The notes beneath the pieces are model-generated. The model made no database searches, was not told the DNA's origin, and worked only from the letters and a program-made list of their open reading frames with translations. Positions 3,795 through 63,480 of a stretch of DNA of 64,000 nucleotides are shown in pieces (the first letter of the stretch is position 1; the number at the start of each line of letters is the position of its first letter). The position numbers and the translations under genes were made by a program. This DNA comes from Saccostrea cucullata. Lineage: Eukaryota. The DNA is taken from the NCBI RefSeq assembly GCF_032062105.1, contig NW_026939872.1, forward strand, positions 1-64,000, given 5' to 3'.

Positions 3795-4422
3795 ATGTCT
3801 TTATCAAAATACACATCAACACCGGAGACCACAAACACTGCTCGGCTGGCGAGACTCATACTGGGTCCCTGTACTGATGTGTTACGTGAAATTCTAAAAA
3901 AGGAAATTCCCCCGTCTGATTTATCTAAAGAAGTGAAGCAATGGATTGATGATCTTAAGAAAAACAAAAAACGCAACCCTCTGAATCCATCACAAAATGA
4001 CATTGTTTTCCCCTCACCGACAAACCAGTATGGGGGAGACTACTCAGATCTGGACATATCTATCTTGTACACCATTCTTCGAAATGTCGGTAAAATACCT
4101 CAACATTCTAAGGGTTGGGGCGAGAATCCAGATCCCGCTGACAGAAGTGTTGCTGCCAACATCGAAAGGGTTCGATTTCTTCGGAACAAATACTACGGCC
4201 ATTCTGCCGATATATCTCTTTCCGACTCAGAATTTAAACAGGAATGGCGGAACATCCGGGATATCGTTGTAGAATTGGAGAGAGATCTTGGGAGTTCTAC
4301 ATTTTATCAGGATTCAGTGACGGATATCAAAATTTGCTCAATGGACCCTGAAACAGAACAGAAGTACATTGAGAAACTGGATAAAGTCGACGAGTTATAT
4401 TCTACAATCTCGAATTTTTCAG
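3795..4422 (+). CDS. Gene 1 coding exon 1: DZIP3-type HEPN domain
   Basis: ORF with DLDISILYTILRN, GWG and IERVRFLRNKYYGH (HEPN Rx4-6H motif). Donor AG|GTACAC at 4422/4423, phase 1, 628 nt. The paralogue exon has identical length. Confidence 0.85.
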
Positions 4423-4766
4423 GTACACAGTACACATAAATAATTAAATAAGAAGAAAACATTTGATTTTCTTGAAGACTTGATGCAAATAATTTTATTC
4501 TTAAATATCATAAAATTTGTTCATGTTTTTATAGATGATATATATAAAATCACAGGATGGATTTCATGTTTTTCATTAATATTTTACCAAAATATCATTT
4601 AGTGTTGTAAAGATTAATAAGATTGCCTGCAAAAGGTAAAATTAATAAATCATTAAAAAATCTACAATCTCTGAATATTGTCAAAATGGGATATTTATCT
4701 AATCTAAAATGTACTTTCAACGAATGGCCTATCCATTGGTGTTATCATACTTTATTATTATTTTAG

Positions 4767-4808
4767 ACAGCATGAAGAATATTAAAGAAAATCTTACAAA
4801 GCTTCGAG
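4767..4808 (+). CDS. Gene 1 micro-exon 2 (42 nt; DSMKNIKENLTKLR, helical/coiled-coil-like linker)
   Basis: TTTTAG acceptor, G|GTGAGT donor, phase 1-1, open frame. A 42-nt counterpart exists in gene 2. Confidence 0.75.
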
Positions 4809-6334
4809 GTGAGTATTGTGAAAATTCATTTATGACATTATTTCTTTGGCAATAAGACATGAAATTATTTAAACTCACTGTCCATATAATGTCCTTAATG
4901 GTCCATGGTTAAAAGTCTTTATATATTACATATAGCAACAGCATTAATCAACTAGGGAGTCTGCTATTGCAAGCAATAGCGTATGTCGCCCCGAACTGGT
5001 TTTATTGTCCCTCGATTTCACGAGAGTGAGGGGACAATGGAACTCATTCATCTACAAGTCTGTCCGATTGTCACAAATATTTACCTTGACCATTATATTT
5101 GATTCAGTGGAGCTATGACTTTCATATCTCATATGTGTATCCCTTGTGACAAGACTTTTGATACCAAAAACTTTTACCCTTTGACCTAGACCTTGGAGAA
5201 CACATGCGCACTTATTAACCTGTTTTTCTTGTTCGTTTCTATGGCAAATGTTAGCGACTAATTACTATTATTTTAAAAAAAGAAATCACTTTGACACATT
5301 ACAAGAAATTATTATTTAAAGTTTCAAAACGATTGCTTTAGTAGTTATTGGGGAAATCGAATTTGAAGAATTTCACTTTTTCCTGCTTCCATGGCAACAA
5401 TCGATTATTTGCGAGACGAACAAGAGCATGCAATAACGTATAAACAATTTCATTTATATTACAAAGTTTATGATGAAAGCAAGTTGATGAAAGAGAACAC
5501 TCATCGTTTAAAAAAGTCGTAAATTTTTGCACGTTCCAATGGCAACCTTGTAGCAAATACAATTTATCATTGAATGAAATGCTGACTGCAAAACCAATTG
5601 TTATCATTATTTATAAATTTTGACCACGGATTTTTTCCGTTATTTCCTGATTATGACAACGAGCACACGGCAAACAAACTGTTTAGGCGTACAGTAGCAA
5701 TAAATCGCCCAACTTTGTTCGGGGAGACAAGTCAATTTATAATAAAAATAATTTATTGACAAATATTAGTGAAATTGTGCAACCCCAATGTGTCTGTATT
5801 TTTACCATATCCTCTTTATTGATTGACTGTGGGGAAATCGAATTTGAAGAATTTCACTTTTTCCTATCCATGGCATACAATCGATTATTGATGACCAGAG
5901 AAATAACAAATTTAAACATTTTTGCACATAAATGACAAAAATATTATTTTGAAACTGAAAGTTATCACTGCAAACTAATCATAACCAGCGATCATCTTAG
6001 GAAAAATATAATTTGTTTCAAGAAGATTGCCCAACCATTTTTTTCATATATAAATTTTGCTAACAAACTTATTAGGCGTATAATCAATTTACAAATATTT
6101 AAAGTAAATTTGGAAAAATAAAAAAGAATAAATAAACATTAATGAATATTATTGAAAAACCTAAAAATGCCTTGTGTTTAATCTCATATATTGACTGCAT
6201 TTTATACTGAAGGAATCTGATTACAATTTACAGTAATAAAAATATTTTAAAATTAAAAATGTACACATCAACACTGGTAACTCAGAGCACTCAAATCAGA
6301 TTGAAATTTTATTTTGACCCTTTTTCTCTTTCAG

Positions 6335-6358
6335 ATCCAAAACTTGAAAAAGAAATTG
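6335..6358 (+). CDS. Gene 1 micro-exon 3 (24 nt; DPKLEKEI)
   Basis: Polypyrimidine tract + CAG acceptor, G|GTATGT donor, phase 1-1. Nearly identical to the gene 2 exon NPKLEKEV. Confidence 0.85.
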
Positions 6359-6779
6359 GTATGTATACTTATTATCAACCTGTATGTATACTTCACTTTC
6401 TCGAACACGGCTTAATTGTCAAAGTGAAACCGAGGTCTCGGCCGTTTTTACTATATACATGTAAATGACAAAAAAAATCTCAAATATCTCAAACACAGAA
6501 CTGGTAAACATGCTATCTTTTGAAGTTTTAATTTTTCTCTCCTGGGTCATATTTAGCAATCAATCTAAGCGCAAGTCTAACACGATCAAGGATGCCTCTT
6601 CCAATATAGTGAATTTCATGGCCCCCGGTAAAAGGTTCTTTTGTTAATGTAGGGTTCTTTTGATAATATAGTAGAATTGGTTGTTTCTTTAAGTGTGATC
6701 TGTTTAAGAAGGTAAAGTGCATAGTTATGATGATCACAGTGTAAAATCTTCTGTTGGGACAAGGCTCTGGGTTTTAAGG

Positions 6780-6946
6780 GGGGTAGTACAACAGTTTCTG
6801 TGACACGTGATGTCGGTTAATACTGTCTAATCCGAAGGACAAGTTTCCTTGTCCAACGGTGGGATTCGAACCCGTGACGTAAGGATCAACTTCTTACTTC
6901 GCAACTCAATAGCAGATGCTCTTACCACTTCGCCACACAGGCGACT
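6780..6946 (-). mobile_element. tRNA-derived SINE-like element in gene 1 intron 3
   Basis: Minus strand has A box TGGCGAAGTGG and B box GGTTCGAATCC followed by a non-tRNA tail. No clean cloverleaf is evident. Confidence 0.55.
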
Positions 6947-7089
6947 AAACAAGAATGATATGCTATCATGTTATAATTTTTGAAAACTATATTGGCTTGG
7001 AATTTTATTTATGTTTTCATAAAATTTAACAAAACATGTATAAGTTTTGTAATATTTTCCTTAATCTTCCGTTTTCTTTATTTGATTAG

Positions 7090-8723
7090 ATTCCAGCAGA
7101 ATTATGATTGAAAGACATGAACAGGACATGACAAATACATTTGTTGAAATAAGAGCTTTAGAGAGAGCAAAACAACTATTAGAGGAGAATAGTTATGTTA
7201 TCATAAAGGGTAACCCTGGCTCGGGGAAAACAACACTTGCTAAATGGTTATTAAAGATATTAATGGATAATGGAAAACGCCCACTTCAGCTCTTTAAGGT
7301 CTCTAAACTTTATGGCAGAGTGACAGCAGATGATAACATTGCAGTCTTCATAGACAATCTGTTTGGTGAATTCTCGTTTTCAAGTACTGAGTTCAACGAA
7401 TTTATCAATAAAAAAGAATTAATCGAATCTGTTTTAAAATCTTGCGAGAACAGATCGGGAAATGTTTTACTTTTGACAATCAGGAATGATATTTACATGG
7501 AAGTGGTCGAGAAACAAAAGTCCAATCCCTTCTTCTGTACCTCTGTGACCGATTTATCAAGTGGTGAATATGCTTTACAAACGAACGAAATAGAAATGTT
7601 TCTCAAAAAATATGGTTTAACTGCAGAAGGCAAGGATGAAGATATGAAAGAAAAACCCTCTGAATTATATCGAACACTGGGATTTCCTCAGTGTTGTAGC
7701 TTAGCACGTGAAAATCCAGAGTTTGGAAAAAATATTTTAACTTTTTTTAATGATCCTCATCTGTATCTTAAAGACTACATTGACACCCAGATAAAAGAAA
7801 AACATGCTAAAACTGCTGTACTTATATACATATTACTGAAAGGTGGTCAAGTGGAAGCGGCGATCTTAGAAAATCCAAAGGATCGGGAAGCTAAAATTGT
7901 TGCTTTAGGAATGCTTGATTTAGGGCGTTCATCATTTGGCCAATTTCAAAAGAGCATTTATTCATATAAAGGTTTCTTAACAAAACATGACAAAATAAAT
8001 AATGCGTTCGTGTTTTCGCACAGTTCTGTTCAGGAGGCACTATTCAAAGAGATGTTTGTTGCATTTCCAGAGGATATAACACGCAATTGTCATCATTCCT
8101 TGCTTCGGAGTTTAACCACAAATATAAATCCAAAAAGTACACAGAATGTCGTAGAGAAGGAAATGTTTGAAATTGTCGCCAGTCGGATCGAACAAATTTT
8201 GAAGAAAGGTTCAGACTCAGGATTCCGTTCGGTATCTGTTTTGGAGCTTTGGAATGATTCAGACTTTTACAATCATGTTCTCAAAAATGAGTTATGTATT
8301 GAATATATTATAAAACAGGTCGATTCCAAAGGAAATGGAATGATAGTACATTTCGCAAAGGCAGGGAATATAGATTGGGTTCGTAAACTGCTGCAGATCT
8401 CAGATGAATCACAAAAGTATCGCTCGCTAAATGCTGCATCTGCAGAAAATCAACAAAGCGCTGTTAGGATTATTTTATCTAGCAGAGTGAAATCTGATCT
8501 AACAACTTGCTTTCACGCAATACATGGTGGAAATGTGGACCTATTCATGGAATTATGCGAATCAGTAGACGCACTTCAAACTTCTTTCTCTCTTCATCCA
8601 AATTGTTCCAACACCAACAACAGTTTACTTCACGAGGTTTGTTCAATGGGGCAATTACGATTTGTGGAACCTTTGTTGAGTCGTTATCCAAAACTTAAGG
8701 ACATAAAAAAACAATTTCGGTGA
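7090..8723 (+). CDS. Gene 1 exon 4, 5' part: nSTAND3-type STAND NTPase, helical/winged-helix region and first ankyrin repeats
   Basis: TAG acceptor at 7087-7089 is in frame (DSSRIMIERH). Walker A GNPGSGKT, Walker B AVFIDNLFG, sensor-1 LLTIR, GxP motif GFPQCC, WHD-like FSHSSVQE. Confidence 0.85.
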
Positions 8724-8730
8724 AACAGCA

Positions 8731-11700
8731 ATGCATTCTGCTGCACAATCTGGAAATATCATTGTCTTCAATCTTCTATTAGAAGCCGGTTTAAATCCTT
8801 TAAATAGAAATTATAAAATGGAAACTGTTCTGACATGCGCTGTTAAACATGGAAAACTATCCATGGTAAAATTCTTGGTAAAACAATACCCAAGTTTATT
8901 GCACTACCATAGTTATTACCGTGGAACCACAATTTTACATCTGGCGGCCTTATCTGGAAATGTTGATCTTTTTGAATTTCTTACGGAACAGTACGAAAAT
9001 CTCTCGACCACACTTAAAAAACCAAATATAAGCGATCGAGATGAAGATGGCCTAAACGTATTACAATACGCATGTTCTGCTGGCCATCTTCAAATCAGTA
9101 AATTTTTAATATTTAAATATCCCCAGCTGCTTTCTGAGAAAGACAATTACGGAGAAGACGTGCTATACAAAGCAGCAGCAGGGGGTAATGTTGATTTGTT
9201 TCAATTCCTAATGAAAAAAGGATTGGATATGGAAAGCACAGCAAAAAACGGGAATAATGTATTGCATTCCTCTTTATACACAGATAAAGAAGACGTGTGT
9301 AGGTTCTTAGTTAACAACTTTCCCGACTTCATAAACAAGAGAAACAATGCGGGATGGACGGCCTTGCATTGTGCATATGAGGGTGGAAATGTCGGGCATT
9401 TAACTTTCCTTTCCGATAAAGGTTTGGATATCGATGCATTAACCAATTGTGGGAAATGTTCCCTTCATATTGCATGTTATAGTGCTAATTATGATGTAAG
9501 CAGGTATTTAGCTGAGAACTATACAAAATTTCTACATATTATTGATAAAAGAGGACACACAGTTTTGAATGATGCAAGCTTTGGAGGAAGCGTAGATATT
9601 TTCAAGCTTTTGATAACTAAAGGTTTAGACATCAACTGTGTAGACCACGACGGAAAGACAGTTCTTCATATCTGCTGTTCTAAGGGAAGAAAAGAAATGT
9701 GCGAATATCTGGTCGAGAATTTCCCAACTTTACTCGATATTAAAGATATCAATGGCTATACAGTTTTACACGATGCTTGTATTGGTGGAAGGGTTGATGT
9801 GGTGGATTTTCTGGTCACTAAAGGCATTGACATCAAAGCCGTGACAAACATTAAAACTTTGAATGAACACACCTATCCAAAAAATAGAGAAATGTCTCAG
9901 TCTTTGAAGAAATTTAAAAATATCAATGTCCTAGGAGGGAAAACGGTTTTACATATAAGTTGTTTATACTGTAGAGGACAGATATGTGAGTATTTGGTCC
10001 AACGTTACCCCCAGTTGATGGAGGTCAAGGACAATGCTGGTAACACAGCCTTACATGATGCATGTCTGGGTGGAAATGTTGGTATTTTGTCATTCCTTCT
10101 TAGAAAAGGTATGGATATCAATGCCTTAACGACCATTGGTAATTCAGTCCTTCATGCTTCATGCATCGGAGCTAAATATCATGTATGTGAGTATTTAGTT
10201 AACAACTTCCCACACTTACTGAATATTATTAACAAAGATGGTTACAAATGTTTGCACAGCTCAGCCGCTGGAGGTAACGTTGACATTTTGAAACTTTTAT
10301 TACGAAAAGGCATGGATATAAATTCCGTCGTAAAAAGTGGAAGAACAGTTCTAGGGATAAGCTGCAGTTTTGCTCGGTCAGAAATGTGTTATTTTCTTTC
10401 CGAAAATTTTGCCCATTTGAAAGACATCAAGGATAATGAGGGTCAAACCGCGTTACATGATGCATGTTGGGGTGGAGATGTGAATATTTTTACTTTTCTT
10501 CTTGAGAAAGGTTTAGATATCAATGTTTTGACAGACAGGAGAGAAACACTACTTCATATTGCATGTGAAAGTGGTAAATACTCCATATGTGAGTATCTTA
10601 TCTGCAACCACTCACACTTACTTAATCATAAGGATATTTATGGCTATACAGCTTTGCATTTAGCAGCGTCAAGTGGTAATATAAATGTCGTAAAACTTCT
10701 GAAAGAGAAAGGAGTGGATATAATGTCTACAGGTCTAAATGGTAAAACTGTATTGCATCTTTCAAGCATGAATAGTAGAAAAGAAATGTGCAAATATATT
10801 CTTGAACATTATCCTGAGCTCAAGGATACTAGGGATGAAGATGGTCACACAGCCCTTCATGATGCGTGTGAGGGTGGAGATGTGGACACTGTGTCGTTTT
10901 TACTTGACAGAGGTTTTGATATCAATGCATTGACGAATACTGGTGAGACTGTCCTACATTCTGCATGTTTCAATAGCAATTATTGTGTTTGCATGTTTTT
11001 ACTTGAGAATCATCCCCATTTACTTAATGTAAAAGACAATGGTGGAAACTCAGTAATGCACGACGCAGCGTCAAGAGGACATGTCAATATTTTAAAGAGT
11101 TTGATAACGAAAGGACGAATATCAATCAACTCACTAGAGAAAAACGGCAAGACCATTCTACATTTAGCCTGTCAATTTGGTAGAAAAGATATGTGCAAAT
11201 ATCTTATCCATAATTTTCCCCATTTAATGAAAATCTATGACATTGATGGTTATACCGCATTGCACGAAGCTTGTGCTAGTGGTGATGTGCCAATTTTTTC
11301 GATTCTTCTAGATAAAGGTATGGATATAAACGAGTTAGACAAATGGGGTTATTCTGTTCTTGACATCGCATGTTCAAATGGTAGATATAATATGTGCAAA
11401 CATTTAGTTAACAAATATAAAGAGTTACTACATATTCCACACCTTAATGGTTTTACAACTTTGCATAGCACGGCTTTAGGAGGCAATGTGGATATCCTTA
11501 AATTTCTGATACGAAAAGGAGTAGAATTCAACCCTGATATAGATGGGAAAACGGTTTTACATGTATGTTGTCTTCAGGGTAAGCAGGAGATGTGTGAGTA
11601 CCTGGTTGAGAATTATTCTTATTTAAAAGATGTTAAAGATAATTATGGTCATACGGCCTTGCACGACGCCTGCATTGGAGGAAAAGTAGGGATGGTCTGT

Positions 11701-11850
11701 TATCTTCTTAGCAAAGGGATGAATGTGAACGCTCTAACAAATTCTGGGCAATGTGTCTTACATCTGGCATATTACAATGGAAAGAAAGATGTATTTCATT
11801 ATTTAGTCAGCAACCATCCTCATTTAATCTTATGTTTATTTAAACATTAA
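8731..11850 (+). CDS. Gene 1 exon 4, 3' part: array of roughly 30 ankyrin repeats (separated from the 5' part by a 1-nt frameshift)
   Basis: 1039-aa ORF of GxTALH/GKTVLH repeats. Removing one A from 8705-8711 gives the continuous repeat LKDIKNNFGETAMHSAA. Confidence 0.9.
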   Translation: MHSAAQSGNIIVFNLLLEAGLNPLNRNYKMETVLTCAVKHGKLSMVKFLVKQYPSLLHYHSYYRGTTILHLAALSGNVDLFEFLTEQYENLSTTLKKPNISDRDEDGLNVLQYACSAGHLQISKFLIFKYPQLLSEKDNYGEDVLYKAAAGGNVDLFQFLMKKGLDMESTAKNGNNVLHSSLYTDKEDVCRFLVNNFPDFINKRNNAGWTALHCAYEGGNVGHLTFLSDKGLDIDALTNCGKCSLHIACYSANYDVSRYLAENYTKFLHIIDKRGHTVLNDASFGGSVDIFKLLITKGLDINCVDHDGKTVLHICCSKGRKEMCEYLVENFPTLLDIKDINGYTVLHDACIGGRVDVVDFLVTKGIDIKAVTNIKTLNEHTYPKNREMSQSLKKFKNINVLGGKTVLHISCLYCRGQICEYLVQRYPQLMEVKDNAGNTALHDACLGGNVGILSFLLRKGMDINALTTIGNSVLHASCIGAKYHVCEYLVNNFPHLLNIINKDGYKCLHSSAAGGNVDILKLLLRKGMDINSVVKSGRTVLGISCSFARSEMCYFLSENFAHLKDIKDNEGQTALHDACWGGDVNIFTFLLEKGLDINVLTDRRETLLHIACESGKYSICEYLICNHSHLLNHKDIYGYTALHLAASSGNINVVKLLKEKGVDIMSTGLNGKTVLHLSSMNSRKEMCKYILEHYPELKDTRDEDGHTALHDACEGGDVDTVSFLLDRGFDINALTNTGETVLHSACFNSNYCVCMFLLENHPHLLNVKDNGGNSVMHDAASRGHVNILKSLITKGRISINSLEKNGKTILHLACQFGRKDMCKYLIHNFPHLMKIYDIDGYTALHEACASGDVPIFSILLDKGMDINELDKWGYSVLDIACSNGRYNMCKHLVNKYKELLHIPHLNGFTTLHSTALGGNVDILKFLIRKGVEFNPDIDGKTVLHVCCLQGKQEMCEYLVENYSYLKDVKDNYGHTALHDACIGGKVGMVCYLLSKGMNVNALTNSGQCVLHLAYYNGKKDVFHYLVSNHPHLILCLFKH

Positions 11851-15909: not shown

Positions 15910-18725
15910 ATCATATGCATTCATCTCCGATCATTTCTCCAAAAATATAATAAAACACCTGCCTGTCTTCATTTAAACGTGCAGATTGAAATACTGTTTG
16001 ACCTTTATTGTCTTTGACTTCAATTTAATGCGGATAATTAGTGGCAAGGAATTCACATGAATCAAATTTACCTGTGCGACATGCAATATGAAGAACGCTT
16101 TCTCCATCATTTGTCAGTGCATCAATATCCAAACCTTTTTCTAAGAGGAACGAAATTAATTTTTTGTCTCCTTTAACACATGCAGAGTGTAATACTGTGT
16201 ACCCCTTATTGTCTTTGATATCAATTAATTTTGGAAAATTAGTGACGAAGAATCTACATGCATCATACTTACCATTTAAACATGCAGATTGGAGAACACT
16301 TTCTCCATCATTTGTCAGTGCATCAATATCCAAACCTTTTTCTATCAGGAAAGAAATCAATTTTCTGTCTCCATTTGCACATGCACAGTGTAAAGCTGTG
16401 TATCCTTGATTGTTTTTTATATCAATTAATTGTGGATAATAAGTGACAATGAATTCACATGCATTATAATTACCAAATAGACATGCAATATGAAGGACAC
16501 CAATTACCTCATTTGTCAGTGCATTAATATCCGATCCTTTCTTAATGAGAACGGAGATCACTTTTCTGTCCCCATTTACACATGCAAAGTGTAAAGCTGT
16601 AAACCCTTCATTGTTTTTGACATCAATTTCATGTGGAAAATTTGAGAAAAGGAATTCACATACATCATATCTACCCACACGACATGCAATATGAAAGATA
16701 TTTTTCTCCGTTAATTGTCAGTGCATCAATATCCAATCCTTTTCCTCCTATTAGATAAGCAATCAATTGTTTGTTTACACTAGCACATGCAGAGTGTAAT
16801 ACTGTGTTTCCTTTATTGTCTTTGACGTCAATTAAATGTGGATAATTATCGACAAAGAACTCACATGCATCATACCTACCACATAAACATGCAATATGAA
16901 GGACAGTTAAACCATCATATGTCAGTGCATTAATATCCAAACCTTTTTCAATCAGAAATGATATCAGTTTTTTTTTCTCCACTAACACATGCAGAGTGTA
17001 ATGCTGTGAACCAAGCGTTGTTTTTCATGTCAATTAATCGTGGATAATTATCTACTAGGTAGCTGCTTATACTGATATCCCCAATTTCAGATGCATAATG
17101 CAACACAGTGTCGCCATTTCTAGATCTAATATCTTTCAAAATAGGATATTTTTCAATCAAAAGCTGTACTAAATGAGTTTGTCCCGAGACACAAGCCTCT
17201 TGGATTAAACTGTGATAAGTATTAGCCCTTACAATTGATAAACAAGTTTGATTCAAATCTACAGACTTACAGATTTTCAATACCAAATCTAAATTACCAC
17301 TTCGTACTGCGTGGAAACAAGCATTTAAATCACAATATATATCTTCCCTTAAAATACGATTGGCGATTTGTACATGATTTTTTCTACTCGCGGCATTTAG
17401 GGATCTATATTTCTGAATTTTATCACAGCTATGTTGTAACAAGTGTTGCACCCAACCAATTTGTCCTGATTTTGCAAAATGCACTAGCATAGAGTTACCA
17501 TTTGAATCCAACCTTTCCTGAAAGCGGTCACTACAGACCTGATCTTTTAAGACATATTCAAAAAATGCATCGTCTTTCCATAACTCTAACAAAGAAATGG
17601 ATTCATATTCATCAGGTGATCCATCTCTCAAACTTTGATTTATTCTACTAGAAACAATTGCAAACAATTCTGCATCAGCCAAAATGTTTCTGCATTTTTG
17701 ATGCTCAGCTGTTGTCAATCTTTGAAGCAAGGTATGGTGACAGTTTAGAATTGTTTCCTCAGGAAGAGTGACAATAAGAATATGGAATAAAATATCTTGT
17801 ACGGAGCTATGGGAAAAGGAATACGAATCGTTAATTTTATCGTACATTTTTAAAAAAAACCTTCAAAAATATGAAAACTTTCGTGGAATTCACCTATTAA
17901 AAGGGGACTTAATTCAAGCATTTTTAATGCAATGGATTTCATAATCCGGTCTTTCTGATCAGAGAACAGCGAGGAATGCACATTTCCACCTTTCAACAGA
18001 AGGTATATCAACACTGCCGTTTTAACAGCTTTTTCTGTTATCAGGGTTTCCATATACTTTTTTAGGAAAAGAGAGGGACTACGGACAAATTTTGGAAGAT
18101 CACTTCCGAGGTCAGGATTCTCATGTGCTAGTCTACAACATTGTGGAAATCCCAAAGGTAAAAAATGCTCGGACTGTTTAAAGTTCATATCTTCTTTTAT
18201 ATCTCGAAGAAGATTATATTTGTTGAGAAACATAGTAAATTCTTCAGATTCTAAGGCATATTCACCAATTGATAAATAGATCTCAGATGAGACGGCACTT
18301 TTTGTTTAGCGGCAATTTCCATATAAATATCGTTTCTGACTGTTAAAATAAGGATATTTCCCATTCCACTATTGTTTGGCTTCACAAGACATTCTATAAC
18401 GTTTTTCTTATTTAAAAAATCGTTCAAGTTATAGAAAACGACGATTCCCCGAATGCATTATCAATAAGTACTGCCATGTTGTCAAACGGCGACACCCGTC
18501 CGTAGAGTTTGGACATTTTAAAGATTTGAAGAGGACGATTTCCTCCATCCATGCAAATCTTCAACAAGCATTTGGCTAATGTCGTCTTCCCGAATCCAGG
18601 AACACCTTTAATTACCACGTATCTGTTTTCCTCTAAAAGTTTTTTTGCTCTGTTAAATGCCCGGGTTTTAACAAGGATTTTCTCCGTTTCCTTATGATGA
18701 TCGTTGACCATAACCATTGTTGTTT
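15910..18725 (-). pseudogene. Gene 2 exon 4: disrupted nSTAND3 NTPase plus ankyrin repeats
   Basis: Collinear with gene 1 (GVPGFGKT, AVLIDNAFG, GFPQCC, FSHSSVQD). Frameshifts near 18425, 18280, 17850, 16970 and 16690. An in-frame TAA at 16025-16027 is followed by more ankyrin sequence (IEVKDNKGQTV). The acceptor was placed by homology (ETTMVM vs DSSRIM); an alternative in-frame acceptor gives an exon start at 18746. Confidence 0.85.
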
Positions 18726-19847
18726 CTATCATGAGTTTAAATAAACCTGATTATGATATTTTTCTTGTAAAAATTCAAGACAAAAATTATTAGTATATCG
18801 CTACCGAACAGTTCTACTTTTTGTATTTTCAGAGTAAAATGTATTTGGCATTTGCGTTAAAATATTGTTGTGTAAAATTTTTGCTGTACTTGTGGCTTTA
18901 TTTCTGTCATTTAGCCCAAGGAAAAATAAAAATGCCATTATGATAATCGCGTGTAAATAAAAGTTTCAGTAGCTATAGTTGTATTAAGATTAAATTTTAT
19001 TTACTTTTTAATATTTTAAAATATCTTGGACAATACAGAAATATATTAAGTAGGAATAGCATGACCCTTTCAAGCCTAGATGACTAATGTGTTGAAGATG
19101 TAAACATAGCATTTTTTATTAATTATTTATTTTTTTAATCTTAGCCGTAAAAATTTATTTCAGTATGTTTACATCATGCTTACTTTAACCTATATCCTAC
19201 ATGTATTTCTATCAGAAAAGGTCAGATTTATTTTAATTTTGGCTCCCCCAAATAATGGCTTTTTAAGTGTTGTTATTGCAAATTGTATTTTTAAAAAACG
19301 ATTTTCCAGATTTTTGAAACATTATACAGGTAATTACCGTTCTCCTTTTTTTTCCTATTCATTCTTTCTTATATTTGAGAGAGAATAGACAATATCTTAT
19401 CAATGTACTTAAATGCTGTTGATTTCTATGAAGTTTCAAATATGTATAATAAAGACTTCACCGGTCTCTATGTATTTTCTACATTTTCCCTAAGCAAACA
19501 ACAGAAACTTGTATTTGATAGTCTACATCTCTAAAATTTATTTTAATTGAAGTTTTATGGTTACCTCATATTCTGCATGTGACCATCTCCTATTTATCCT
19601 ACTTTAACAATTGTTTAGGTCACTGTTTCGTTTTCTTCAAGATGCCTTTTCAATACAATAATTTAATCCTGGTTGTCACGCTGTATTTGATTGGATAAAA
19701 ATTCATATCGTATAAAAAGGGTTGCCTACGTCACAATGACGCGCAAAAACGTACCAATCCGCAAATTTTTTTTTACAAATTGGTCATTTTTTTTCTTACA
19801 TTAAATGAATGAAAATTAAAATTATAAGCAATGAAGTTAAAATTTAA

Positions 19848-19960
19848 AAGCTACCCATTCTATACGATATTAACTGGGTTGAAACAGTTTACGCTTTTTT
19901 ATAAACCGCGATAGCATATCTGCCCAAACCCAGTTTATACCGTATAAAATGGGTAGCTAT
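19848..19960. repeat. Imperfect long palindrome, probably the core of a non-autonomous palindromic element
   Basis: AGCTACCCATTCTATACGATATTAACTGGGTT pairs with AACCCAGTTTATACCGTATAAAATGGGTAGCT. Confidence 0.7.
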
Positions 19961-20079
19961 TAAATTCATCCCTTAATTAAAATAAATACTCGTATATGTA
20001 AATTCATTTAATAACTGTTAGATTTCGTTGATAGAAAACAGAGTTTGATGCCGTATATATATATATATTTATCAACCCT

Positions 20080-21338
<1,259 letters not shown>

Positions 21339-21492
21339 ATATATAATGGCATTGGAGTCACAGTTTGAGTGGGGAAAAATCTCCGTCAGTTATTCGTTCT
21401 GGTTATTAAAATAAAACCCAGCCATTGGATATCATAAACGTACATACGTGTTGAAAAATCTTTAACTGAGGACAATGTGAACATATTCATAC

Positions 21493-21516
21493 CTACTTCT
21501 TTTTCAAGTTTGGGAT
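21493..21516 (-). CDS. Gene 2 micro-exon 3 (24 nt; NPKLEKEV)
   Basis: TTTTTTTCAG acceptor and G|GTATGA donor; homologous to 6335-6358. Confidence 0.85.
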   Translation of the reverse strand: MPNLKKK

Positions 21517-21614
21517 CTGAAAAAAAGAATCAAGGCAATATAAGACATATTAATCACTGAAAAATATGCATTGAGATGTTCCGAGATAAAATAATCAACA
21601 CGTTCATCACTTAC

Positions 21615-21656
21615 TGATGTGCAAACTTAGTTTCTTTTCCATGTCACTCAGCTTCT
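21615..21656 (-). CDS. Gene 2 micro-exon 2 (42 nt; EKLSDMEKKLSLHI)
   Basis: TTTTCAG acceptor, GTAAGT donor, phase 1-1, same length as gene 1 exon 2. Confidence 0.75.
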
Positions 21657-22054
21657 CTGAAAATATATATTTATTTTAATACACTCAAAATAGTATAATT
21701 TAAAATTGATTATGAACATTTGAGAGTTTAAAATAAATGTAAATAGGAAAAGGAGAATATAAAAGGAAAGCTGGTTTTTTTTTCAAAAAACAAACGATAA
21801 AGGTATGAAAACTGAACTCTGCTTGGATAATGTAAGGAATTTTATCGCACATATTTTTTTTCAATAGATTTCCATAACAAAATATCCAATCCTTCCAGTT
21901 GAAACATAAGCAGTAGATCTACCTTTTCACAATATTACACAGCCCAAAAAAATCTGTCGCTGCTTTCTGTTCCATATTCTTTGAAGAGAGTATAAAATAA
22001 TTCAAAATAACCAGTATTTAAGTAAAATGAGCCTCTATTTGAAAGTATATGTAC

Positions 22055-22682
22055 CTGAAAATTTAGACACAGATGAATGTAGATCTTCAAGAACCCCAAG
22101 TCGGTTTATGTATTTATGCTCATGTTCAGGATCCATGGAACATGTTTTTATTTCTTTCACAGACTCCTGGTAGACAGTAGACATCCCTAGATAGCGCTCT
22201 AATTCAACAACGATATCCCGGATGTTCCGCCATTCCTGACTAAACTCTGAGTCAGAAAGAAATATATCGGCAGAATGGCCTTCGTATTTGTTCCTAAGAA
22301 GACGAATCCGTTCGATATTTGCGGCGACACTTCTATTAGCGGGGTCTGGATTCTCGCCCCAACCTTTAGAATGTGGAGGTATTTTACTGACATTCCGAAG
22401 AATGATGTACACGATAGATATATCAAGGTCTGAATAGTCTCCCCAATACTGATTTGTTAGTGAGGGGAAAATGATGTCATTTTGTGATGGATTAAGAGGG
22501 TTGCGTTTTTTGTTTTTCTTGAAATCATCAGTCCATTCTTTGACTTTCTTGGATAAATCATACGGTGGAATTTCCTTTTTAAGAATTTCACGTAATACAT
22601 CAGTACATGGTCCCAGTATGAGCCTCGCCAGCTGAGCGGTGTTTGTCGTCTCTGGTGTCGATGTGTACTTCGATAACGACAT
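22055..22682 (-). CDS. Gene 2 coding exon 1: DZIP3-type HEPN domain (intact ORF)
   Basis: About 80% amino-acid identity to gene 1 exon 1 by manual count; RNKYEGH motif; donor AG|GTACAT; 628 nt. Confidence 0.85.
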
Positions 22683-42461: not shown

Positions 42462-44340
42462 CGTTACCTGTTACAGGTAGGTAGCTTTAAATTTGGTACA
42501 TCTTACAGGTCGGTGTTAAAATAAGACATCTGTAAGAAGTATGAGGGTTAAAGTTCTAGAATTTCATTGTGTAAATATCTGGTACCTGTTACAGGTCGGT
42601 GTACTAATAACTGGTACCTGTTTCAGGTCGGTATGTTATAATCAGACATCTATAAGAGTAAGAAGGGTTAAAAAACTAGCATTTGATTGTGTAATAATCT
42701 GGTACCTCGTACAGGTCGATGAGCTGAAATCTGGTACCTGTTACAACTAAGTATGCTATAATCAAACATCTGTAAGAGGTAGGAAGGTTAAAGTACTAGC
42801 ATTTAATTGTGTAATAATCTGGTACCTGTTACAGGTCGGTGAGCTGAAATCTGCTACCTGTTAAAGGTCGGTGAGCTAATATATCTGGTACCTCTTACAG
42901 GTCGATATGTTATAATCAGACATCTGAAAGAGTTAGAAGGGTTAAAGTACTAAAATTTTATTGTGTAAATATCTGGTACCTGTTACAGGTCGGTGAGCTA
43001 AAATCTGGTACCTGTTACATGTCGGTATGCTATAATCAGACATTTCTAAGAGTTTGGAGGGTTAAAGCAATAGAGTTTTATTGTGTAAATGTCTGGTATC
43101 TCTTACAGGTCGGTGACCTAAAATCTGGTACCTCTTACAAGTCGGTATGCTATTATCAAACATCTGTAAGACGTAGAAGGGTTAAAGTACTAGCATTTGA
43201 TTGTGTTATGATCTGGTACCTCTTACAGGTCGGTGAGCTGAAATCTGGTACCTGTTACAAGTCAGTATCCTATAATTAGACATCTGTAAGAGTAAGAAGG
43301 GTTAAAATATTAAAATTTTATTGTGTAAATATCTGGTACCTGTTACAGGTCGGTGAGCTGAAATCTGGTACCTGTTACAAGTCGGTATGTTATAATCAGA
43401 CATCTGTAAGAGGCAGGAGGTTTTAAGTAGAAACATTTGATTGTGTAGTAATCTGGTACCTCTTCCAGGTCGATGAGCTGAAATCTGGTACCTGTTACAA
43501 GTCGGTATACTATAATTAGACATCTGTAAGAGGCAGGAGGGTTGAAGTACTAGCATTTGATTGTGTAAAAATCTGGTACCTCTTACAGGTCGGTGAGCTA
43601 AAATCTGGTACCTCTTACAAGTCGGTATGCTATTATCAAACATCTGTAAGACGTAGAAGGGTTAAAGTACTAGCATTTGATTGTGTTATAATCTGGTACC
43701 TCTTACAGGTCGGTGAGCTGAAATCTGGTACCTGTTACAAGTCGGTATGCTATAATTAGACATCTGTAAGAGGCAGGACGGTTGAAGTACTAGCATTTGA
43801 TTGTGTAATAATCTGGTACCTCTTACAGGTCGGTGAGCTAAAATCTGGTACCTCTTACAAGTCGGTATGCTATTATCAAACATCTGTAAGACGTAGAAGG
43901 GTTAAAGTACTAGCATTTGATTGTGTTATAATCTGGTACCTCTTACAGGTCGGTGAGCTGAAATCTGGTACCTGTTACAAGTCGGTATGTTATAATCAGA
44001 CATCTGTAAGAGGCAGGAGGTTTTAAGTACAAACATTTGATTGTGTAAAAATCTGGTACCTCTTTCAGGTCGTTGAGCTGAAGTCTGGTACCTGTTACAA
44101 GTGGATATGCTATAATTAGACATCTGTAAGAGGCAGGAGGGTTGAAGTACTAGTATTTGATCGTGTAATAATCTGGTACCTCTTACAGGTCGGTGAGCTG
44201 AAATCTGGTACCTGTTACGAGTCGGTATGCTATTATCAGAAATCTGTAAGAGGCAGAAGGTTTAAGTACTAGAATTTAATTGCATAAATATCTGGTACCT
44301 GTTACAGGTCGGTGAGCTGAAATGTAGTACCTGTAAAAGA
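42462..44340 (-). repeat. 120-bp tandem array in the right foldback arm
   Basis: Reverse complement of the 36490-38420 array. Confidence 0.95.
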
Positions 44341-59336: not shown

Positions 59337-60961
59337 ATGTTTGGGCGAATAACTAAAACTCTTATTTCATGTATTACCAGAATAATTGAAGCCAAACACC
59401 ATAAATAAAACTCAAGACAAATTACACGAAAGAGCAGCAATCCAAAAACAATATTACGACCGAAATATCAGACAAATGCCTGAATTAAAAACAGGTGACG
59501 CTGTGCGATTCCGGGAAGGAAAGATGTGGAAACCGGCAGAAAACTTTTCTGTGTTAAAATTGTAGCATCTTTATATTTTGTGCATTTTGTGAAGTAATAG
59601 TTTGTATGTGGTACATGCCTGCGTGTGCGTGTGTAAAGGGAGGGGGGCAGGGTTGATATGAATGATGAAACATTTGAGATTATTTTTCCACTCTTTGGAA
59701 AGGTCTGAAAAGTTGCAAATGATCCTCCCCTCCCCGTTTGACATTAGCTCGAGACCTTTTAACTGTTGAAATGTTCATTGAAACCCAACAGTTTTTATTA
59801 ATGCAATTCATGTAGTAAGATTGTGAAAAAGTAAAAGTACTGAAAGATGTTGGACTTTGAACAAAATTGTCTTTTGTATTTTTCGCTTGTCAAACTCCTT
59901 TTAAATAAGTATTATGTAGGAAACCCCCTACACACACACACTTTCAAATACGATTCTACGTCATTGCTATGTCAGCGATTTTCGTGAATAAGAGACTGAA
60001 AATGACTTAATAACCTGTTTTTAATTAAAAAAAATCAAAGGCCTGAAGGGCCTGCGAGTTGACTCGCTCGAGTCAATTGAGCTTTTTCATACATCTGGGC
60101 ACCATACCTTAATATATTCAGTTTATTTTGCATCTTAAGAGATTGAATATTATATGTCTGATCCATGTTCGGTTCATAAATAAAGTGTATATTGCTTTTC
60201 CTTAATAAATACAGGTTGGCACTAATGGGCTTCCGTATTATTTTGACTGGATTCTATAATTTCAGCACATTAGCTGAAGTGGTCAGTGTTATGGAATAAT
60301 TAGATTAAAGATTCCCACAGCAAATCTGGATTCTAAAAATAGATTTTCAACAACAACTAACTGCAGCTAATGAGAGCAGCAGGTGTTTGTGTTAGGGAGT
60401 ATTCTAGGTCAATTATAAATAAACTTCAGATGGGAAGATTAGATCCGCCTTACAAGTTTGAACATATTCATACGCAGTAATTGTACATGTTACAGATATT
60501 TAATCAAAAATTTCTTTAAAAGCATGAAGGTATAAATAATGTTACAGTAAGGAATTTTATACAGTTTTTACCTCTTAAGTTTATACAAACACTCAAACCA
60601 AAGCATGTATTGCTAGAACTATTATCTTTGGCGTATGAATCACCTTGATGAATGCGTGAAAATTTTTACAGCTCTGAAACGGTTAACCCTCTGAAACGGC
60701 TATGTCGACAGGGAGTAGCTCGCTACGCGAGCCAATTCAAAAAGGATTTAATATCAATAAAATATATCGTTTATGATGAAAAGCATGTATTTGAATTGAT
60801 TAAATATAAAATAATATATTCCGTTTTCCGTCCCGCGCTTTAGCAACACCCCATTGACACTGACGCGCTTCCAAAATTCCAGTCAAAAATGTTGTAATCG
60901 AACAAAGGGCAACAAGGTCGCGCTGCGGAGTACAAATAAATCGTCCTAAGCGTTAAATCCA

Positions 60962-61308
60962 TGATTGATTGATTGTATATTGTTTAACGTCCCTCTCGAC
61001 AATTTTTCACTCATATGGAGACGTCACCGTATGCCGGTGAAGGGCTTCAAATTTTGACGTTTACTCGGCACTCAGGGCCATTGAGTAGCGAGGGATCTTT
61101 ATCGTGCCAACGCCTGCCGCTGACACGGGGCCTCGGTTTTTAAGGTCTCTTCCGAAGGACCCGCAACTTTCACTTCAAAGTGCCGAGCGCATGGCGAAGG
61201 AACAGTTGCTATCAATTTTAACGACTAGGTCAGTCGCGGCCGGGATACGAACTCACGACCTCCCGATCACGGATCGAGCGCTCTACCGTCGAGCTACCGT
61301 GAACGGTG
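60962..61308 (-). mobile_element. Full-length SINE, same family as 55336-55675
   Basis: Reverse complement match over the whole length; flanked by the imperfect direct repeat GCGTT(A/T)AATC. Confidence 0.85.
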
Positions 61309-62009
61309 CGTTTAATCGAAGAAATGTGAATGAGCAAAAGGTAAAGTTGGGTTCCAACGGAGTTAAGTGATCGTAACCTCTAACTCCACTAAGAGACATT
61401 TTCTTATGTATATTTGCGATAAATTCTACTGCTGCTAATTGTTGGTGTATCTGACAATTATTTTAATTAATGTCATATATATGGGAACTGCTGAAACAGA
61501 TTGTTTATCTTAAAGGGCCGGGGGGAGTATAAAGATTTTGAAAGGTTTTCTTTATTTACTTCGATATTTACAGTGCAGGGAACTAATTATGTTACATAAA
61601 CCAGCATCAGGATCAGCATAAGTAGGATCAGGATAGAACTAGCATCAGCATCAGCATTTCAAAAAACAGCATTACTTGGATCAGCATCAGCAAGCAAAGG
61701 ATAGAACTAGCATTGACCAAAGTTAAAACAAACAAAGGAAAGTCATTTAATACAAATAACAAATAAAAACTAGACCTTATTTTTGTCGTTCAACAAAAAC
61801 GGAGGGCTTTTCGACCCCTGAAAATTAAGGAGCTTAAAGTGAATAGGTTATTACATAATAACATTTCAAAAGGTTCATTATGCTTCAAGTGATATCAATA
61901 ATGAAACATTACAAGTCACTATATTCATCAACAGCTACTCAAAGAGATATAACTCTTTCACGATTATTCAAAAAATGCAACAAAAAACCCGACTGTTTTT
62001 CAATTCACT

Positions 62010-63480
62010 AATGGACATTGCATGATTTCAAATTTAACTGAGAAATCTCCATAGTCAAATTTAATGTACTTATAAAACCGGAAATACTGCACATACCCAT
62101 ACCAAAATTGAAACATAAGGAGCATATAAGACCCCAAACAGGTTGACAAAGGGAGTTAACTCTTGCTCAAATATTTTTGAAAATACTTAAAAATACAAAA
62201 TTTCAGGTGTCTAAAACACGTATAAGGGATCAAAAAATGACCCCACGGACCATAATTTTTAAATTGCTCTTTTTATGCTGAACTCAAAACCGAAATCAGT
62301 TTGACGATTGAAGGATAAATAAAACAGTTATATACAAAAATCGATTTTCCGTACTGACCCCTAAAATCCCTTTTATTTTGAGAAATTTTATTTTCATGAC
62401 CTTACCACCCGAAGGCAATACTAAAGTTATTATTCATGTGAAATATCACAAGACTCGCTTGCTTCCCTTTGAAAATAATGGACATTGCATGATTTCAAAT
62501 TTAACATGGAAATCTCCGTAGACAAATTTTATGAACTTATAAAACCGGAAGTACTGCACATATCCATACCAAAATTGAAACATAGGGAGCATATAAGACT
62601 CCAAACAGGTTGACAAAGGGAGATAACTCTTGCACAAATATTTTTGAAAATACATAAAAATACAAAATTTCAGGTCTCTAAAAAACCCATAAGGGGTCAA
62701 AAAGTGACCCCACGGACCATTATTTTTAAATTGTCCTCCTTATGCTCAACTCAAAACCGAAATCAGTTTGAAGTTTGGTGGATAAATAAAAAAGATAAAT
62801 ATATAAAAGTATTTTCTGTACTGACCCCTAAAATCCCTTTTATTTAAAGAAATTTCATTTTCATGACTTAACCACCGGAAGGTAATACGGTAGTAATTAA
62901 TCATGTGAAATATCATGAGACATGCTTGCTTTCCTTTGAAAATAATGGACATTGCATGATTTCAAATTTAACATAGAAATCTCCATAGGCAATATTAAGG
63001 TACTTATAAAACCGGAAGTACTCTACATATCCATACCAAAATTGAAACATAGATGGCATATTAGACTCCAAACAGTTTGACAAAAGGAGATAACTCTTGC
63101 ACAATTATTTTTGAAAATGCTTAAAAATACAAAATTTCAGGTCTCTAAAAGTCCTTTAAGGGGTCAAAAAGTGACCCCACGGACCATAATTTTTAAATTG
63201 TTCTTCTTATGTTGAACTCAAAACTGAAATCAGTTTGAAGATTGGTTTATAAATTAAAAAGTTACAGGGCAAAAACGGTTTTCAGAGTTGACCCCAAAAA
63301 ATCCCTAAGTTTTAGGGATTTGGTTTTCATAACCTTTTCCCATGAAGACAATGCTGAATTAGTTATCAACTATAAATATTATGAAAATTGCTTGCTTTTT
63401 TCTTGAGATAATGGAACACGCATGATTCGTTTATAATATAGAAACTCCCATAGACAATTTAAAAGACATATAGAACCGGA
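62010..63480. repeat. 467-bp tandem repeat (~3.2 units), probably the internal array of a Helentron-like element
   Basis: AATGGACATTGCATGATTTC at 62010, 62477 and 62944, with a decayed copy at 63410. AACTAG plus hairpin end near 61768. Confidence 0.85.

Follow-up and report, generated by a model that had tools for sequence, protein, structure and literature searches.

Three long open reading frames (ORFs) lie one after another on the forward strand of an oyster contig; do they encode one protein, and if so, what might it do? The question is raised by a window of 64,000 nucleotides (nt), by which we mean the whole stretch analyzed (Saccostrea cucullata assembly GCF_032062105.1, contig NW_026939872.1, positions 1 to 64,000), which contains no N. 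An initial annotation, made from the sequence alone, had proposed that these ORFs and two micro-exons are spliced in frame, all in phase 1, into a protein of ~1817 amino acids (aa) with an N-terminal HEPN domain, a STAND nucleoside triphosphatase (NTPase) and about 30 ankyrin repeats. We find that the locus is one genuine, spliced, four-exon gene with the domain order HEPN, linker, nSTAND3, ankyrin repeats (Table 1). With moderate confidence, we place it in a large oyster family that evolves by birth and death and consists of putative single-chain cytosolic immune receptors, in which a ligand bound by the ankyrin repeats would cause STAND assembly and thereby switch on a HEPN RNase. All searches and structure models were made exon by exon, with single chains only.

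The three introns, of 344, 1526 and 731 nt, have GT-AG borders and are each in phase 1, and both micro-exons are stop-free and in frame. The predicted junctions 4422/4767, 4808/6335 and 6358/7090 were all found in contigs of RNA run X1, from a relative ~92% identical over exon 4, which skip exactly 344, 1526 and 731 nt. None of the three skips was found in DNA run X2, whose contigs cross intron 1 and parts of introns 2 and 3. The RefSeq model XP_062592670.1 (Saccostrea cucullata LOC134254142) holds the translations of all four exons at the expected offsets and ends at 775 aa, and one 6.6-kb Logan contig carries a homolog as an intron-free 1754-aa HEPN-nSTAND3-ankyrin ORF. In paralogs, exon 1 ends in a phase-1 donor, and a phase-1 acceptor precedes the position of the NTPase ATG by 14 nt. 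Nearly all of them contain the 24-nt micro-exon, in three clade-specific variants, while counterparts of exon 2, 39-54 nt long, occur in most paralogs and in S. echinata; the micro-exons are present in the RefSeq models of paralogs as well. Since the RNA contigs, the splice sites of the paralogs, the RefSeq model and the uninterrupted homologous ORF agree, we conclude that the splicing at the three junctions is real. Three independent genes are ruled out by the RNA junctions, the RefSeq model and the S. echinata ortholog, and bacterial contamination by the spliceosomal introns and the oyster homologs. A transposon was also rejected, since no transposase or reverse transcriptase Pfam match was found in the ORFs of the gene.

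The length arithmetic agrees with the ~1817 codons proposed, but the assembly itself does not encode the full length: the frame changes between ORF2 and ORF3, and a TGA is read at 8721-8723. The S. echinata ortholog (P0003), which is the sister of the window gene in the trees of both the HEPN exon and the NTPase exon, is continuous across this break, matching ORF2 at 85% (residues 1-530) and ORF3 collinearly at 80% (residues 535-1571). At its locus (L041 4918-14728), the three upstream exons are all present, their splice sites are intact and the motif reads RNKYYGH; RefSeq models only the last exon there, as PP6 ankyrin subunit-like, and misses the HEPN exons. Comparison of the last exon with this intact ortholog at the DNA level leaves a single net change that breaks the frame, a difference of one base in the length of a run of seven A residues (A7). 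The ratio of nonsynonymous to synonymous substitution rates (dN/dS) against the ortholog is 0.16 for HEPN, 0.21 for the NTPase, 0.36 for the ORF2 tail and 0.28 for ORF3.

We think that the frame break is probably a homopolymer assembly error. That it is real, so that the window copy is a recent null allele or a pseudogene, or yields no more than the truncated 775-aa RefSeq product, is a serious contender at somewhat less than even chances. A real break would agree with the TGA read in the assembly and with the decay of neighboring and near-identical copies, which carry stops and indels outside homopolymers. It sits less well with a break that is single and located at an A7 run, with an intact S. 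echinata ortholog, and with 3.1 kb of open frame at dN/dS 0.28 behind the break; an RNA contig of the ~92%-identical relative also stops aligning within the A7 run, a weak point in the same direction. Because dN/dS is 0.28 in ORF3, the sequence downstream of the break was under constraint, and such constraint fits an assembly slip and a recent null allele equally well. The correction of a single base in the initial annotation agrees with one break of one base, which we place at the A7 run.

Table 1. Coordinates of the HEPN-nSTAND3-ankyrin gene and of related copies
Feature	Position	Strand	Description
ORF1	3795-4439	+	Open reading frame list
Exon 1	3795..4422	+	DZIP3/hRUL138-like HEPN and start of helical linker; phase-1 donor
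Rx5H motif RNKYYGH	4182..4202	+	R130, N131, H136
Exon 2	4767..4808	+	42-nt micro-exon, helical linker
Exon 3	6335..6358	+	24-nt micro-exon, PKLEKEI
Exon 4, first part	7090..8300	+	nSTAND3 module: nucleotide-binding domain (NBD), HD1, winged-helix domain (WHD), helical arm; PF20720
ORF2	7104-8723	+	Open reading frame list
Walker A	7209-7232	+	NTPase motif
Walker B	7341-7370	+	NTPase motif
Sensor-1 R	7482-7484	+	NTPase motif
GxP	7680-7688	+	NTPase motif
WHD His	8019-8021	+	NTPase motif
~4 degenerate ankyrin repeats	8301..8723	+	Ank_2 match, ORF2 residues 444-527; ends at TGA after frame break
A7 run with single frame break	8706..8712	+	DNA comparison with S. echinata ortholog
ORF3	8731-11850	+	Open reading frame list
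30 ankyrin repeats, to stop codon	8731..11850	+	ORF3; mostly 33+34-residue doublets
Second, convergent paralog	15914..22682	-	Exons 22682-22055, 21656-21615, 21516-21493, ~18725 onward
Decayed copy L036	contig C17545 ~60850-62060	-	81-91% identical to window NTPase; stops, multi-base indels

The three profiles by which the domains were to be checked, HEPN_DZIP3, nSTAND3 and Ank, were all matched. Exon 1 scored 99.4 bits against HEPN_DZIP3 (Pfam PF18738; cut-off 27, E value 2e-28) and contains an Rx4-6H motif with N after the R, and on this profile score and motif it is assigned to the HEPN_DZIP3 family. The R, N and H of the motif, intact in the window gene as had been claimed, are invariant in 29 bivalve homologs, out to scallops and unionids; of 60 HEPN exons from the genome, every one has N131 and H136, and 59 have R130. 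The median dN/dS of the HEPN domain against paralogs was 0.11 (31 non-saturated pairs), and its structure model is all-helical with a predicted local distance difference test score (pLDDT) of 87.

The start of exon 4 matched nSTAND3 (PF20720) with 86.8 bits (cut-off 27.2, E value 1.6e-24), while the Pfam scores for NACHT (21.1, cut-off 26.7) and NB-ARC (12.8, cut-off 23.5) were below threshold and confined to the P-loop region. The Walker A and B, sensor-1, GxP and WHD motifs listed earlier are all present, and across 55 sequences their key residues are conserved (K in 53, D in 54, R in 50, G and P in 55, H in 55), with the refinement that the Walker B sequence is hhhhDN and not hhhhDD; the second residue is N in 18 of the 55, including the window gene. 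PADLOC returned only a P-loop match for the window gene, with no Avs model among the matches, and a sequence search of PDB with the NTPase exon found no significant relative. The NTPase model (pLDDT 90) has the NBD-HD1-WHD fold, and its fold matches include SAMD9 (Z score 12.5, tied top), the maltose-system regulator 8bob, NRC2, NLRP3/9, NOD2, Avs4/5, Dark and Apaf-1. Its nearest neighbors in the Atlas are mollusc and bacterial nSTAND3 clusters with template modeling (TM) scores of 0.77-0.84, and one bacterial nSTAND3 cluster, 1/4 of it with an Mrr nuclease, has a TM score of 0.79 to the oyster model. In their similarity to the NTPase model, bacterial nSTAND3 clusters, some of which carry Mrr nuclease or PUA domains, equal one of the mollusc clusters (TM up to 0.79).

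In Avs7, an Arg touches the gamma-phosphate of ATP and a His the beta-phosphate of ADP, and exchange rather than hydrolysis is needed for activation (PMC13581612). We infer by analogy that the conserved sensor-1 R and WHD His may be the equivalents of these two residues. The NTPase domain of EfAvs5 has been described as inactive yet ATP-dependent (PMC11897194). The ankyrin array that follows comprises ~30-34 repeats in all, 30 in ORF3 and ~4 more, degenerate, at the end of ORF2, which bears out the estimate of about 30.

The gene is not alone in its genome. We found at least 150 matches to the HEPN exon and at least 100 to the NTPase in S. cucullata, in many cases with the two no more than a few kb apart, and in clusters; these family counts are lower bounds, and haplotig duplication may inflate them. 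The open frame of the last exon ranges from a few hundred to >3000 codons across copies, and many copies are broken. A second tier of >50 HEPN_DZIP3 exons, at 39-47% identity, is also present in the genome. Among 48 long proteins with this HEPN subfamily, drawn from S. cucullata, S. echinata, Magallana gigas, Ostrea edulis and further contigs, nSTAND3 is present in 48 and ankyrin repeats in 44. Their automatic names are "uncharacterized", "ankyrin-1-like", "rabankyrin-5-like" or "PP6 regulatory ankyrin subunit-like", which are uninformative, in keeping with the expectation that pipelines would often label such proteins by their ankyrins only. The HEPN-nSTAND3-ankyrin build also occurs in Magallana and Ostrea, and HEPN-nSTAND3 in scallops and unionids. 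More distant nSTAND3 relatives were found in Pecten, Argopecten, Mizuhopecten, Potamilus, Sinanodonta, Tegillarca and the snail Gigantopelta, with HEPN, DED, Ig or other domains at their N-termini. Individual examples (P0037, P0044, P0066, P0031 and P0061, of which P0031, P0037 and P0044 are from scallop) include DED, Ig and Ig+HEPN heads as well as a tandem nSTAND3-ANK arrangement in Gigantopelta.

The HEPN and NTPase trees produced largely the same three clades, which match the three variants of the 24-nt exon; since both trees and the exon variants are concordant, the two domains travel together. In a comparison of window positions 3795-4421 with the nearest paralogs, L021-L024 and L040, synonymous divergence (pS) was 0.40-0.53 in the HEPN exon against 0.67-0.74 in the NTPase. 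This lower synonymous divergence in exon 1 hints at gene conversion.

The second paralog within the window has the HEPN motif RNKYEGH and a 201-bp tandem array of ankyrin doublets at 15964-17012. In the part checked it contains four frameshifts, near 18430, 18302, 17859 and 16976, three of which are at runs of at least 5 bases and one elsewhere. A 166-bp tandem repeat (20339-21255) lies in its last intron, and copies related to it occur both at other places in the window and at the S. echinata locus. Approximately 500 bp of the sequence upstream of both paralogs (700-1213 and 23242-22753) are 77% identical and are partly found upstream of the S. echinata ortholog as well; this common segment is partly a dispersed repeat and possibly regulatory. 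Farther along the window, two tandem arrays with a 120-bp repeat run in opposite directions (36489-38367 and 42465-44334).

How far is such a gene already described? An expansion of DZIP3-type HEPN domains in oyster, including fusions to ankyrin and NACHT, has been reported, and an RNase L-like defense role was proposed for related HEPN-NACHT proteins (PMC3710099). The DZIP3/hRUL138 HEPN family described there is the same domain family; the three-part build, nSTAND3 and the gene structure are absent from the part of the description considered here. Pearl oyster has >50 NLR-like HEPN-NACHT proteins, for which an RNase function was proposed, and Rx4-6H is found in 194 of 202 HEPNs (PMC9646362), and HEPN-NACHT expansions are known from anthozoans (PMC8260672). 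The oyster gene resembles these HEPN_DZIP3-NACHT proteins in having an N-terminal HEPN with Rx4-6H, a STAND module and C-terminal repeats, and in being part of an expanded group of proposed immune RNases, but it has nSTAND3 and ankyrin doublets where they have NACHT and LRR, TPR or WD40 sensors. Oyster immune expansions that use STAND, HEPN and ankyrin modules also include the TRADD-N receptors of Crassostrea (PMC8195603), although none of the domains of the TM-DED-TRADD-N or HEPN-Ig-DED-TRADD-N proteins was detected in the window gene beyond those shared modules.

The NLR- or Avs-type layout that had been proposed stands as to the order of effector, STAND module and repeats, while its NTPase belongs to nSTAND3, as in Avs5, and not to NACHT or NB-ARC; a canonical NLR is further set apart by its LRR, since Pfam found only ankyrins here. 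With bacterial Avs5/nSTAND3 proteins, which are activated by assembly (PMC11897194; bioRxiv 2025.07.08.663546), the gene shares the Pfam NTPase family, the enzyme-STAND-repeat layout and a fold match. Avs5 differs in being bacterial, with a SIR2 NADase effector and a TPR/Sel1/PPR sensor in place of HEPN and ankyrins, and membership does not extend to the sequence level. For Avs7, an ADP-to-ATP switch and nuclease assembly have been described (PMC13581612). SAMD9 is reported to be an anticodon nuclease (PMC10246899). SAMD9/SAMD9L are, like the oyster protein, animal single-chain STAND proteins with an RNase-type effector of their own (in the oyster a predicted one), and SAMD9 was among the tied top fold matches of the NTPase. 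The SAMD9 nuclease is of the AlbA type and its sensor is TPR/OB; in the oyster gene there are no AlbA, TPR or OB Pfam matches, and identity to SAMD9 is 16% in the aligned part. RNase L likewise joins an ankyrin sensor to a HEPN-superfamily domain, its dimerization-activated KEN RNase, but it is built as ankyrin-kinase-KEN with a pseudokinase and a 2-5A ligand, whereas the oyster order is reversed, with STAND and no kinase. Judged by its domain matches, then, the window gene is a HEPN_DZIP3 and nSTAND3 member that falls outside the canonical NLR, Avs5, SAMD9 and RNase L groups.

In a literature search that was not exhaustive, no paper was found on the HEPN-nSTAND3-ankyrin version or its function; neither nSTAND3 in molluscs nor a test of a DZIP3-type HEPN was found either, the nSTAND3/PF20720 hits being Avs5, fungal NLR and one unrelated paper. 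The novelty once claimed thus holds in that no functional study was found, but the concept is already in print (PMC9646362 and PMC3710099), and the gene is one of >100 family members. Bivalve and cnidarian HEPN-NACHT receptors and the oyster HEPN expansion were already known; the nSTAND3-ankyrin version appears to be new.

The favored mechanism is an analogy with STAND and HEPN biology. At rest, the protein would be an ADP-bound, auto-inhibited monomer with the WHD His on the ADP and the ankyrins folded back. The ankyrin array would bind a protein of a pathogen, or a host protein altered by infection; ADP would be exchanged for ATP via the sensor-1 Arg, and the STAND domains would then assemble. 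Assembly would pair HEPN domains through the helical micro-exon linker into a composite RNase site formed by two motifs, which may cut host or viral RNA and stop translation in the infected cell. In its favor we count the domain matches, the splicing, the co-occurrence of this HEPN subfamily with nSTAND3, the conserved R, N and H, the concordant HEPN and NTPase trees, the STAND fold, purifying selection (dN/dS about 0.1-0.3) and the precedents of Avs7, Avs5 and SAMD9.

Several results weigh against this mechanism. The best VIA fold match of the HEPN model was Csm6, with a modest Z score of 8.6 (root mean square deviation 3.3, 114 aligned), in a range common for helical bundles; Roquin, AF_0298 HEPN, sacsin, AbiF and LsoA were also among the best matches, a set that agrees with a HEPN fold. 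Foldseek returned nothing for the HEPN model, the sequence search of PDB with the HEPN exon returned no significant relative, and we found no report in the literature of a DZIP3-type HEPN cutting RNA. Because Walker B is DN, ATP hydrolysis may be weak or slow. The ankyrin binding face gave no sign of positive selection against the S. echinata ortholog (0.36 vs 0.24; one pair). Finally, raw reads of the poly(A) runs X10 and X11 contained no junction reads and gave almost no depth over exon 4, and this scarcity in both libraries may reflect low expression or absence of the gene from those animals.

In the strongest of the rival explanations the HEPN domain would be an RNA-binding or homotypic adaptor within a STAND-ankyrin immune sensor, with output through partners such as the DED-headed nSTAND3 relatives. 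Scallop nSTAND3 modules do carry DED or Ig at the N-terminus, the second fold match of the HEPN model is to an RNA-binding protein, Roquin, in its ROQ region, and the HEPN of sacsin is reported as RNA-binding. Set against this, R, N and H are nearly invariant in ~90 sequences while adjacent residues vary, and inactive HEPNs usually lose the motif; we regard an adaptor as unlikely. A gated RNase serving self/non-self rejection or stress-induced death, as in fungal NLRs, with allorecognition, transmissible tumors or transposon RNA as its occasion, seems to us a rather slim prospect. Similar repeat doublets and a last-exon ORF of variable length resemble fungal allorecognition NLRs (PMC13449251), and infectious tumor cells have been raised as targets of related oyster proteins (PMC8195603), but bacterial nSTAND3 proteins and SAMD9 are antiviral. 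A non-immune role in housekeeping or development, either as a scaffold comparable to the NLRP2/NLRP14 lattices or as an enzyme of RNA processing such as Las1, is very improbable: oocyte NLRPs are among the top fold matches and purifying selection acts throughout the gene, but a family of >100 copies, with clusters in tandem and many of its members broken, fits conflict-type genes and not single-copy housekeeping genes.

If the gated HEPN RNase is active, animals would have, in addition to SAMD9 and RNase L, a further route in which sensor and nuclease share a single chain, and the 2013 prediction of DZIP3-type HEPNs as immune RNases would become directly testable. Most molluscs have 5-20 NACHT proteins (PMC9646362), and since oysters appear to have few of them, NLR surveys keyed to NACHT and LRR would miss the nSTAND3 loci of this family, at least 100 in number. 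For disease resistance in oyster farming it is relevant that two farmed species, Magallana gigas and Ostrea edulis, have intact members. We tentatively suggest, as an idea that may well prove wrong, that bivalves possess a large unrecognized class of receptors built on bacterial-type nSTAND3, and that its oyster branch, concealed by names that refer to ankyrin repeats, might be a STAND-gated HEPN RNase which would sense pathogen proteins directly and kill or silence the infected cell, as a eukaryotic counterpart of the anti-phage Avs proteins.

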